From the sequence record NC_047815.1: a DNA stretch of 64,000 nt, one strand, 5' to 3'. Positions within the stretch are counted from its first letter, which is position 1. Every line of letters begins with the position of its first letter. Both the position numbers and the translations under genes were made by a program. Below, in pieces: positions 3,040-8,248 of this stretch. The notes under the pieces were generated by a model that was given only the letters and a program-made list of their open reading frames with translations, was not told the DNA's origin and ran no database searches.

Positions 3040-3207
3040 ATGACAAAACAGAAAACAATCCCATTCAACTGTCCTCAAAGCAATCAGGTAGTTCAATGTA
3101 CGGCAACAGAAATGATGCGCATGATGTTGACTGATCTACGCAAGCAGGGACGTGATATTAATCACAGTGGCCTCGTGTCTCAGGCTCAGAAAGGAAAACA
3201 TGGCTAA
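3040..3207 (+). CDS. 55-aa small protein missed by ORF track (MTKQKTIPFNCPQSNQVVQC...)
   Basis: Fills gap exactly: starts 2 nt after upstream TAG and its stop overlaps the next start. Confidence 0.55.
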   Translation: MTKQKTIPFNCPQSNQVVQCTATEMMRMMLTDLRKQGRDINHSGLVSQAQKGKHG

Positions 3208-3733
3208 CTTCTTTACTGCTGATACTCACTACGCCTCTCAGCGTACTCTGGAACTCAGCCGTCGTCCATTCCCGTCAGTAACTGACATGGACGAAACAAT
3301 GATACTTCGCACCAACGCTATGTGTCGCGGCAGTGATGTGTTGTACAACGTTGGTGACTTCGGTGACTACCGTGTGGTGCGTCGTCTTGTTCCTAAAGTT
3401 GTATTGATTTGCGGCAACTATGAACACAACGATATTGAACGCGACTACGGCGGCAGCTTTGAAGAGTTCCGTCGTGCGCTGATCAAGATGGGATTCCGCG
3501 ACGTGTTGCTCAACAATCATGTTGTTGATGATATGTGGCTCAATCACTTTCCTAATCAGATGGTAGAAAGCCGCTTCAACTTGTTCGGGCACATTCATCG
3601 TCTACAGATGGTTCGACGCAACGGTCTCAACGTTGGCGTCGATTGTCACGACTATGCGCCTATCAGTTTGGACACTGTAAACTTCTATCGTAATGCGATT
3701 GAAAATCATTATGACGATGAGGTGTTCGGCTAA
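3200..3733 (+). CDS. calcineurin-like metallophosphoesterase
   Basis: DTH, GDF, GNYE, NH, GHIH motifs in canonical order; AAGGA SD before ATG 3200. Confidence 0.85.
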   Translation: MANFFTADTHYASQRTLELSRRPFPSVTDMDETMILRTNAMCRGSDVLYNVGDFGDYRVVRRLVPKVVLICGNYEHNDIERDYGGSFEEFRRALIKMGFRDVLLNNHVVDDMWLNHFPNQMVESRFNLFGHIHRLQMVRRNGLNVGVDCHDYAPISLDTVNFYRNAIENHYDDEVFG

Positions 3734-4439: not shown

Positions 4440-5021
4440 ATGTACACCGATGATCAAGGCAATGAAATCATTGAGCACGATGATGTAATCTCTGGTTTGC
4501 AGACCACGCTTGAAAAAGCTGTGCATACAGAACTGAACTACAACATCCTGTCCGACATTCGTTATGCTCACGAGATTCCTGTGTTTCCTCAGGCTCTCCA
4601 GAAAACTGACGAAGGCAACTATCATCTTGTGTATGATAGCTGTGGTGAAGATAGTTCAGAACTAAGCAAAAAGCGTGTACTGGATTTTCTGATAACTCCT
4701 ATCGCAGGTGAGAAGTACAGCGATACCTCTTTCCCGCGTCTGGTCTCTGATGTGAATTCTATCCTTCAGGATCTGCATGAATCTGGTCAGGGTCACGCTG
4801 CAATTTTAGGCCGTCGCTTAGACGATGGTTCAACTGCCGTCTATATTCGTGCGTTCAAGACAGGCGATTTCCCGTGTTCTGAACATCCAGAACTGTTGTT
4901 GGCTCAACCGCTTGGTCAACATCATTGTCGTATCTGCCGTGAAATGCAAATGGCAGGTTGTTTCCACTTACCACGAGAGTTCAACGATGAAGGTGAGCCT
5001 GTCAATGCCGAACAAGACTGA
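4440..5021 (+). CDS. hypothetical protein with C-terminal CxxH...HCxxC metal-binding motif
   Basis: TAAGGA SD; CSEHP...HHCRIC...GCFH. Confidence 0.7.
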   Translation: MYTDDQGNEIIEHDDVISGLQTTLEKAVHTELNYNILSDIRYAHEIPVFPQALQKTDEGNYHLVYDSCGEDSSELSKKRVLDFLITPIAGEKYSDTSFPRLVSDVNSILQDLHESGQGHAAILGRRLDDGSTAVYIRAFKTGDFPCSEHPELLLAQPLGQHHCRICREMQMAGCFHLPREFNDEGEPVNAEQD

Positions 5022-5475
5022 TGCGCAAGGTGGATATTGGGAAGTAGTTCCTGATGCTCGTAGCGAAACTGTACTGCGTCAGATCGCTGCGACGTTTATG
5101 GACACTGACGAACTGCCTGACCTGCATGTAACGCTTGCCTACGATGGTCGCAACCCAGAAGTGGAGGCCAAGGTAAATCCAGATGAAGTATTCAGCGCTA
5201 CTATTCGTGGTGCTGAACTGTTCGGCGACAAGTCAGACATTCTGGTACTGTTGCTTGATAGCGAAGAACTGCACGCAGAGCATCAACGCATTCATGCTTG
5301 TGGCTGCGCGAAGTTTGACTTCACACCTTACAACCCACACGTGAGTCTCAAGTACGGTGCACGTCAGGCTGAACTTGATCATTTACGTGAAATGGTATTT
5401 GTGCCTAATCGCCCTCCAATCGACTTGCTGTTTTCTGGTGAGCGTCGTGAGCTGGTGGACGAAAACGCACGATAA
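5005..5475 (+). CDS. acb1: 2H phosphoesterase, Acb1 / T4 gp57B-like
   Basis: Two HxT/S motifs (LHVTLAY, PHVSLKY); LVLLLDSEELHAEH...FDFTPYNPHVSL parallels gp57B as recalled; AAGGTGAG SD before ATG 5005. Confidence 0.8.
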   Translation: MPNKTDAQGGYWEVVPDARSETVLRQIAATFMDTDELPDLHVTLAYDGRNPEVEAKVNPDEVFSATIRGAELFGDKSDILVLLLDSEELHAEHQRIHACGCAKFDFTPYNPHVSLKYGARQAELDHLREMVFVPNRPPIDLLFSGERRELVDENAR

Positions 5476-5481
5476 CACAAG

Positions 5482-5505
5482 GCGGTGGCTTCGGCTGCCG
5501 CTTTT
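5482..5505 (+). terminator. intrinsic terminator
   Basis: GCGGTGGC-TTCG-GCTGCCGC followed by TTTT. Confidence 0.75.
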
Positions 5506-6985: not shown

Positions 6986-8248
6986 ATGGGACGTGGATTT
7001 GACGCCATTCCAGACAATAGCTCACGCGATAACTTGCGTGAAGGTGATATTTTTGAAATCTACCCACTAGCAAAGAAAGCAAACAACACATGGGTGTCGT
7101 TGCGTCTTCTGCCTGGCGATCTGCTGCCGATTAAAAAGCACTGGATTCGCATCATGGGTGGCAAAGACAAAGATAAAGCCATCAAGATTCCACGTATGTG
7201 TGTTAGCTTTGACCCAGACAATCAAGGTCAAGAACTGCGCGGCATGAAGTGTCCTTACTGTGGCATCGAACATGGTAATGATGAGTCCGGCGCACCAGCA
7301 CAGTACGATTTCAAATGGTATGCTCAAGCGATTGTTCGTGATCTGCAAGCAGCCAAGCCTAAGCGTGTTGCACAGCATACCAAGAAAGAAAAGCAGACAG
7401 GCAAGAAAGAAAAGACCAGTGAAAGCTGGACGCCAGTTGTTGCTATCGGTATGTCAAATGCAATGGCGGGCAAGATTCGTCAGATGGGTGAACGTAACTT
7501 TGCTCAGGTCAAAGACAAAAAGTCTGGTCAAAAGATCAAGAAAGCGTTTCCTATCACTGATGCAAAGTACGGTATCGATATTGATATTAAGTACAGCCCG
7601 AAAGCTGCGCCTGCTGATCGTTACTCGTTCGAGAAAGGTGAACGTACACCTCTGACCGAAGAAGAACGTGAATATCTGACCTGGGACTTTGATAACTGGG
7701 AAGAGATCTATAATCTGCTTGGTCGTCTCGATGAAAAAGGCGCGTTGGCTGACTTTAAAAAGATGGACGTTATCGGCGGTGAATCTACCGAGTCAGATGA
7801 TGACGACGATGACGACGATGATGACGACGATATGGCGCTTGGCCGTAAGAAGAAAGGCAAAGCTGATAAGTCGTCCAAGAAAAAGAAACGTTCGTTGGAC
7901 GATGACGACGAAGACGATGATGAAGACGAAGATGATCTGCCTAAGAGCAAGAAGAAAGGCAAGTCCTCCAAGACTTCTAAAACAACCAAGTCTAAGCGTT
8001 TGCTTGACGACGACGAAGACGACGATGAGGATGATGAGCCTAAGAAGAAAAAGTCGTCCAAACTCAAGTCCAAGTCTTCTGTGAAGAAGAAAAAGAAAAC
8101 CGTTCTTGACGACGATGAAGATGAAGACGACGCGCCGAAGAAGAAAAAGAAATCTTCCAGCAAGTCGGTCAAGTCTTCCTCAGTGAAGAAAAAGAAAAAG
8201 TCTTCTGATGACGATGAACCCGTCAAGAAGAAAAAGAAAAAGAAGTAA
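6986..8248 (+). CDS. gp32-like single-stranded DNA-binding protein with long D-block/K-block tail
   Basis: LRLLP...HW...C...CPYC Zn-site pattern as in T4 gp32; next to UvsX; last ~155 aa low complexity. Confidence 0.7.
   Translation: MGRGFDAIPDNSSRDNLREGDIFEIYPLAKKANNTWVSLRLLPGDLLPIKKHWIRIMGGKDKDKAIKIPRMCVSFDPDNQGQELRGMKCPYCGIEHGNDESGAPAQYDFKWYAQAIVRDLQAAKPKRVAQHTKKEKQTGKKEKTSESWTPVVAIGMSNAMAGKIRQMGERNFAQVKDKKSGQKIKKAFPITDAKYGIDIDIKYSPKAAPADRYSFEKGERTPLTEEEREYLTWDFDNWEEIYNLLGRLDEKGALADFKKMDVIGGESTESDDDDDDDDDDDDMALGRKKKGKADKSSKKKKRSLDDDDEDDDEDEDDLPKSKKKGKSSKTSKTTKSKRLLDDDEDDDEDDEPKKKKSSKLKSKSSVKKKKKTVLDDDEDEDDAPKKKKKSSSKSVKSSSVKKKKKSSDDDEPVKKKKKKK

Follow-up and report, generated by a model that had tools for sequence, protein, structure and literature searches.

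Among the phage proteins that counter bacterial defence, the closest described relatives of the gene analyzed here are the 2H phosphodiesterases of the Acb1 family, with which phages break down the cyclic-nucleotide alarm signals of the bacterial defence CBASS. In phage T4, the gene named Acb1 is gene 57B, and T4 Acb1 and nine further homologues that were tested were all active on 3'3'-cyclic GMP-AMP (3'3'-cGAMP) and cyclic triadenylate (cA3) (Hobbs et al., 2022; PMC9117128). The T4 enzyme has a catalytic tetrad formed by H44, T46, H113, and T115, four residues that stack on the bases (Y12, W74, F107, and W147), and an adenine contact, E141 (Hobbs et al., 2022). A survey of 75 viral 2H phosphodiesterases assigned T4 Acb1 and the enzyme of Burkholderia phage BCSR5 to the same structural group, which is broadly active (Doherty et al., 2025; bioRxiv 10.1101/2025.08.21.671373). 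Among Erwinia phages, acb1 is the commonest anti-defence gene (61 genomes; 2026 pangenome study, PMC13480210), and the same study reports type I CBASS (systems of antiphage signaling that use cyclic oligonucleotides) in some E. amylovora genomes.

Here, we analyzed gp235 of the Erwinia jumbo phage vB_EamM_Yoloswag (KY448244.1 / NC_047815.1; 259,700 bp), a gene encoded within a 64,000-nucleotide stretch of DNA (hereafter, the window) that was identified by 100% identity over a 3-kb query. The window covers record positions 186001-250000 and is numbered from 1 at its first nucleotide; unless noted otherwise, coordinates are given in window positions. The coding sequence of gp235 as deposited occupies 5005..5475 on the + strand (record 191005-191475) and encodes a 156 amino acid protein, plus the stop codon, which is named "hypothetical protein" in GenBank and "RNA ligase" in RefSeq, and which is not discussed in the papers that mention Yoloswag. 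Our analysis indicates that gp235 is an ordinary, though divergent, member of the known Acb1 family, and that it is likely to be a single-domain, metal-independent 2H phosphodiesterase of this family with an anti-CBASS role.

gp235 is a divergent member of the Acb1 family

To place gp235, we compared it with protein family models, with its own relatives, and with solved and predicted structures. The Pfam Acb1 model (PF23474) matches gp235 with 57.6 bits (cut-off 27, E=1.5e-15), an assignment already held by the precomputed Pfam annotation of the protein, and PHROG 755 matches it with 114 bits (E=7.6e-33). The generic Pfam 2_5_RNA_ligase2 model reaches 39.5 bits, and the NCBIfam ThpR model (TIGR02258) stays at 16.9 bits, below its cut-off of 65.7. 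It should be noted that T4 gp57B also falls in PHROG 755 (228 bits), which indicates that the "RNA ligase" label of this family is a legacy name. The RefSeq product name of gp235, and of its orthologues in phages Alexandra, Y3, and fHe-Yen9-02, has the same wording as this label, and is misleading.

An exhaustive profile search identified 770 cluster representatives at E <= 0.001, and a word-index protein search reached 9 close relatives. An alignment of 115 single-domain relatives (A2) was the source of both a family profile and an AlphaFold model, and every one of these sampled relatives (115/115) is matched by Pfam Acb1. When run against solved structures, the A2 profile matched Acb1 of Erwinia phage FBB1 over its full length (1.9e-28), followed by the BCSR5 phosphodiesterase (4.7e-24), and, more weakly, by a domain at the C-terminal end of the portal protein of cyanophage Pam3 (3.8e-14), a plant cyclic phosphodiesterase (CPDase; 0.0044), and LigT/ThpR (0.2 or worse).

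The AlphaFold model of gp235 is a compact single-domain 2H phosphoesterase fold, predicted with a mean local confidence (pLDDT) of 93.3 and a predicted template modeling score (pTM) of 0.87. A Foldseek search of the model against the PDB ranked the BCSR5 phosphodiesterase first (9Q2G/9Q2Y; template modeling score, TM, 0.64-0.73), followed by FBB1 Acb1 (7T26/7T27; target TM 0.64-0.67), while Usb1, plant CPDase, and LigT appeared at lower ranks (TM ~0.4-0.56). Among predicted viral structures (BFVD), the top match was the orthologue of Dickeya phage JA29 (TM 0.88/0.92), which bears the UniProt name "Anti-CBASS protein Acb1", and further jumbo-phage proteins of the same name ranked next.

An initial annotation, made from the sequence of the window, had described gp235 as Acb1-like, had proposed structure prediction and comparison with Acb1 as a check, and had named closer clustering with LigT/ThpR as one result that would speak against it. 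At the family level the description holds, since Pfam Acb1, PHROG 755, the family profile, and Foldseek all place gp235 with Acb1, and the confident model has its best matches in the BCSR5 phosphodiesterase and FBB1 Acb1. Closer clustering with LigT/ThpR was found neither by profile nor by Foldseek; membership of this latter family was ruled out by the ThpR score, by the profile E-value of 0.2 or more, and by a Foldseek TM of ~0.4.

The similarity to T4 Acb1 can also be seen locally. The same annotation had likened residues 80-117 of gp235 (5242..5355, + strand) to T4 gp57B; this segment comprises the central strand, a helix, and the loop toward the second catalytic motif, and contains F106, the counterpart of T4 F107. 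A comparison with gp57B of phage T4T (HM137666.1), which served as the T4-side sequence, bears this out, as residues 80-119 of gp235 align with residues 82-120 of gp57B with 19/40 identical positions (48%; BLASTP E=2e-8).

Catalytic and base-contacting residues are kept, whereas the C-terminal lid tryptophan is not

To evaluate whether the active site is conserved, the functional residues of T4 Acb1 were mapped onto gp235 through a family-guided alignment, the C-terminal part of which is less certain. Eight of the nine are kept or conservatively replaced, the exception being the lid residue W147. Both His-x-Thr/Ser motifs pointed out in the initial annotation are present on the + strand: the first, H41-V-T43 (5125..5133), provides the counterparts of T4 H44 and T46, and the second, H112-V-S114 (5338..5346), those of T4 H113 and T115. 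The histidine of each motif is invariant among the 115 relatives; the threonine of the first motif is found in 114 of them, and the third position of the second motif is Thr in 81 and Ser in 33.

The base-contacting residues follow the same pattern. T4 Y12 corresponds to Y11, which is Tyr in 99 and Phe in 10 of the 115 relatives, and T4 W74 and F107 correspond to F73 and F106. Next to the stacking tyrosine, gp235 has a tryptophan, W12 (Y11 and W12, 5035..5040, + strand), which occurs in 17/115 relatives, essentially those of a clade of jumbo phages to which Yoloswag, pEa_SNUABM_5, Alexandra, Y3, JA29, and fHe-Yen9-02 belong. The adenine contact E141 of T4 maps to E149, the residue at which the last strand of the gp235 model ends and with which the C-terminal tail begins (E149 to R156; 5449..5472, + strand).

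In the residue map, the lid tryptophan W147 of T4 aligns with A155. The C-terminal tail of gp235 has no aromatic residue, and in the alignment of 115 relatives the lid tryptophan is missing across the jumbo-phage clade; a tryptophan in the tail was found in 16 of these relatives. Based on A155 and on this short tail without an aromatic residue, we did not assign gp235 to the T4/FBB1 subgroup, which has a flexible C-terminal lid with a base-stacking tryptophan. Since the BCSR5 enzyme, which is deposited as Acb1, uses an N-terminal lid, we treat the C-terminal Trp lid as a trait of a subgroup that does not define the family.

A probable anti-CBASS function and its alternatives

Taking T4 and FBB1 Acb1 as models, the substrates of gp235, its anti-CBASS role, and the timing of its expression can be proposed by analogy. 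In the proposed mechanism, H41/T43 and H112/S114 would carry out acid-base catalysis on the 3'-5' bond beside an adenosine, with Y11, F73, and F106 predicted to stack on the bases and E149 to recognize the adenine. Its substrates would be cyclic di- and trinucleotide alarm signals, among them 3'3'-cGAMP and cA3, and ring opening by way of a 2',3'-cyclic phosphate would give linear products unable to activate CBASS effectors, allowing the phage to avoid abortive infection. The substrates expected for a member of the family are 3'3'-cGAMP, cUA, and cA3. This function is favored by the family placement, the fold, and the kept active-site residues described above, by the activity of T4 Acb1 and all nine further homologues tested (Hobbs et al., 2022), and by the Acb1-type nature of the two best structural matches, of which the BCSR5 enzyme shares a broadly active group with T4 Acb1 (Doherty et al., 2025); the reported occurrence of acb1 in 61 Erwinia phage genomes and of type I CBASS in some E. 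amylovora genomes agrees with it. Lacking the C-terminal lid tryptophan, gp235 may differ from T4 and FBB1 Acb1 in rate or substrate range.

Several observations weigh against assigning this function to gp235. The global identity to T4 Acb1 is ~22% in the family-guided alignment; Ala takes the place of the lid residue W147, and 7 residues follow E149, compared with 11 after E141 in T4 Acb1, whose effect is abolished by removal of the lid (Doherty et al., 2025). In that same study, some groups of viral 2H phosphodiesterases were inactive on every messenger tried, and the Yoloswag protein is absent from the 75 enzymes that it covers; likewise, a search of supplements of Hobbs et al. (2022) did not turn up Yoloswag. 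Finally, there is no recognisable anti-defence island around gp235, which lies in a block with sigma-like factor, single-strand DNA-binding protein (SSB), and UvsX genes, and analysis of nine neighbours with Pfam and PHROG yielded a weak metallophosphoesterase match (gp231), the sigma-like factor, and otherwise families of unknown function only.

Part of this evidence fits a second explanation, in which gp235 keeps the family and the chemistry of Acb1 and has a shifted or narrower substrate range than the T4 enzyme. Such an enzyme could cleave some CBASS signals only, could leave decoys such as 2'3'-c-di-AMP intact and thereby not set off Panoptes-type systems, or could act on another nucleotide messenger. 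The missing lid tryptophan and short tail across the jumbo-phage clade, together with the confinement of W12 to this clade, point in this direction, as does the finding that substrate range varies both between and within structural groups, with the BCSR5 enzyme sparing 2'3'-c-di-AMP (Doherty et al., 2025). Nevertheless, gp235 keeps the residues that stack on the bases and read the adenine in T4, specificity is set by the core and not by the lid (Doherty et al., 2025), and no feature of gp235 indicates a particular alternative substrate. We regard a shifted range as possible but unlikely.

A related and similarly tentative idea is that the jumbo-phage clade as a whole represents a distinct lid variant of Acb1, the substrate range of which may not be that of the T4 enzyme; it might, for example, spare decoy nucleotides and so keep from triggering Panoptes-like systems. 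The clade is characterized by the absence of the C-terminal Trp lid, by the tryptophan beside the stacking tyrosine, and, in the closest relatives, by a conserved N-terminal extension (see below). If this idea were true, the fixed site of the gene beside replication and recombination genes would mark its counter-defence function as part of the core of these phages, and not as an accessory one.

A third explanation, suggested by the RefSeq name, is that gp235 is a ThpR/LigT-type 2',3'-cyclic phosphodiesterase that heals RNA ends during repair of phage RNA or tRNA. The 2H fold and the His-x-Thr/Ser motifs are common to both kinds of enzyme, and both the 2_5_RNA_ligase2 match and the PHROG 755 label can be read in this way. 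Against this, T4 Acb1 itself belongs to PHROG 755, the ThpR score is far below its cut-off, the profile match to LigT/ThpR compares poorly with that to Acb1 (0.2 or worse versus 1.9e-28), and the Foldseek TM to LigT is only ~0.4. In addition, we found no tRNA genes in the whole 259.7-kb Yoloswag genome, and no RNA ligase or polynucleotide kinase is annotated among its 333 features, although the many hypothetical proteins among these limit this result. The absence of these genes makes a role in RNA repair less likely, and altogether we consider this explanation improbable.

The least probable explanation, a plant/yeast CPDase-type enzyme that hydrolyzes ADP-ribose 1'',2''-cyclic phosphate and acts together with the macro-domain protein gp13 on ADP-ribose derivatives, draws on a weak profile match to Arabidopsis CPDase (1FSI; E=0.0044), a Foldseek TM of 0.50-0.56, and the presence of an "Appr-1-p processing protein" in the genome, but this match trails that to Acb1 by more than 20 orders of magnitude, gp235 and gp13 lie ~180 kb apart, and the residues kept in gp235 are those that hold the cyclic dinucleotide in Acb1. 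Even when taken jointly, RNA-end and ADP-ribose chemistry are improbable, and an Acb1-type phosphodiesterase directed against CBASS signals is the function that we favor.

The coding sequence of gp235 probably begins upstream of the deposited start

The longest mechanical open reading frame (ORF) containing gp235 spans 4825-5475 (+ strand), and thus begins well upstream of the deposited start. The initial annotation had placed the true start at 5005 and not at 4825. To examine these positions, and an in-frame ATG at 4987 that would add 18 nt (4987..5004, + strand) and yield a 162 amino acid protein, we counted synonymous and non-synonymous codon changes per frame in Yoloswag and three close relatives.

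Over the 120 nt that precede 4987, we counted 13-15 synonymous changes and 8-11 non-synonymous ones in the frame of the upstream gene gp234, compared with 2-3 synonymous and 20-22 non-synonymous changes in that of gp235. The pattern is reversed within the 18 nt from 4987 to 5004, where the gp235 frame has 2-3 synonymous and 0-2 non-synonymous changes and the gp234 frame has no synonymous changes (0) and 2-3 non-synonymous ones. Accordingly, by its substitution pattern the upstream part of the mechanical ORF (4825..4986, + strand) is noncoding in the gp235 frame. Homologues stop short of this region, and a start at 4825 was ruled out on both grounds.

The in-frame Met-Lys-Val at 4987 has an equivalent in all four sequences of the comparison set (4/4), and in pEa_SNUABM_5, the closest cultured relative, the equivalent of 4987 is the sole start codon before the conserved Gly-Gly-Tyr-Trp. 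Since the pattern of codon changes flips at 4987, and given the start in pEa_SNUABM_5, the ATG at 4987 is better supported than that at 5005. This choice, which relies on sequence comparison, is tempered by the small counts and by a Shine-Dalgarno-like sequence that is stronger ahead of 5005 than ahead of 4987. Hence, the rejection of 4825 in the initial annotation stands, its choice of 5005 is not favored by the relatives, and the true start probably lies 18 nt upstream of the deposited one.

With a start at 5005, gp234 and gp235 overlap by 17 nt; a start at 4987 would extend this overlap to 35 nt. In an AlphaFold model of the 162 amino acid form, the extra N-terminal residues have a pLDDT of ~51, which is too low to speak to a role as a lid. 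The N-terminal extension is absent in JA29, Alexandra, and Y3, and the more distant members of the clade have very short N-termini.

gp235 lies in a conserved block of genes

A profile search of the whole Yoloswag genome in six frames showed that the Acb1-like gene is present in a single copy. The gene immediately upstream, gp234 (4440..5021, + strand), belongs to phrog_29033 and runs into the beginning of gp235; JA29, Alexandra, Y3, pEa_SNUABM_5, and two metagenomic contigs show an overlap of this type as well. Beyond this pair, the gene order is conserved and comprises the phrog_29033 gene, the Acb1-like gene, a small gene, a sigma-like factor, SSB, and UvsX/RecA, an arrangement shared with JA29, Alexandra, fHe-Yen9-02, pEa_SNUABM_5, Y3, and two metagenomic contigs.

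Directly 3' of the gp235 stop codon there is a stable hairpin (5479..5504, + strand; RNA folding energy -17 kcal/mol, z=-2.1), which has an 11-bp stem and a 4-nt loop and precedes a T-rich stretch. A scan for consensus terminators did not list this hairpin, which might serve as a terminator or have a stabilising effect. Promoter-like sites were no more frequent than expected from shuffled sequences (7 vs 8.3).

Further genes of the phage are worth mentioning in their own right. First, gp231 (3200-3733), located 1.3 kb upstream of gp235, encodes a calcineurin-like metallophosphoesterase (Metallophos_2, 23 bits, below the cut-off; PHROG 547) for which a sequence search of solved structures returned no relative; pEa_SNUABM_5 and one metagenomic contig also have a counterpart upstream of their Acb1-like gene. 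Second, gp238 (6986-8248), which is annotated as a single-strand DNA-binding protein, ends in a tail of ~150 residues that consists almost wholly of alternating Asp/Glu and Lys/Ser runs. Third, gp224 (1-666, cut by the window start) is annotated as "CRISPR/Cas system associated", and its JA29 counterpart as "putative exonuclease". Finally, outside the window, Yoloswag encodes the macro-domain "Appr-1-p processing" protein gp13 (L010:10422-11006), a Dam methylase, gp25 (L010:16590-17429), and a DHH phosphoesterase, gp158 (L012:27557-28672), each a candidate for a further role in counter-defence or nucleotide signaling.

Acb1-like domains are also found in longer phage proteins

The searches also identified Acb1-like domains that are part of larger proteins. 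The match to the Pam3 portal protein (8hds chain A) covers residues ~481-611 and keeps both His motifs; the words "phosphoesterase", "phosphodiesterase", and "RNA ligase" do not occur in the Pam3 structure paper. Similar domains were found in several long phage proteins, one of them annotated as structural, including P0064 (residues 689-829 of 1009) and P0121 (residues 408-538 of 912). Together, these matches suggest the existence of virion-borne 2H phosphodiesterase domains. Two other proteins, P0017 (2833 amino acids) and P0021 (581 amino acids), contain 18 and 7 short profile-matching stretches, respectively, a repetition that is unusual and may be low-complexity noise.

gp235 compared with known 2H phosphodiesterases

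The presence of acb1 in Erwinia phages is already recognised by Pfam, UniProt, and the 2026 survey, and our analysis describes no new mechanism. It corrects the names "hypothetical protein" and "RNA ligase" for gp235, and probably its start codon as well, and it adds to the catalogue of Acb1-type enzymes a jumbo-phage clade without the lid tryptophan. Because this tryptophan is thought to be important in T4, the clade provides a useful natural comparison for separating the control of activity by the lid from that by the core in viral 2H phosphodiesterases.

Compared with T4 Acb1, gp235 has the same Pfam and PHROG assignments, a single domain of ~150 amino acids, both His motifs, and residues equivalent to Y12, W74 (as Phe), F107, and E141. 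It differs in the serine at the position of T115, in the alanine at that of W147, in a tail that is four residues shorter, and in its surroundings, as T4 acb1 adjoins ipI, whereas gp235 adjoins the sigma-like factor, SSB, and UvsX genes.

Acb1 of FBB1, likewise an Erwinia phage, is the best profile match among solved structures and is matched by Foldseek with a probability of 1.00. Its identity to gp235 is ~20-21%, and it has the C-terminal Trp lid that gp235 lacks.

On the other hand, the cellular enzymes, E. coli ThpR/LigT among them (5LDI, 4QAK, and 1IUH), resemble gp235 in their 2H fold and two His-x-Thr/Ser motifs, but they are larger proteins with a TM of ~0.36-0.44 and 14-17% identity.

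Finally, the closest structural match is 2H PDE-9 of BCSR5 (9Q2G/9Q2Y), an enzyme that, like gp235, has no C-terminal Trp lid. Its identity to gp235 is also ~20-21%, and its N-terminal lid, an ordered stretch of ~15 residues that shuts the active site, is demonstrated, whereas the N-terminus of gp235 is predicted with low confidence. The conserved tyrosine of PDE-9 is found at about position 19, and with a start at 4987, gp235 would have 16 residues ahead of its own tyrosine.

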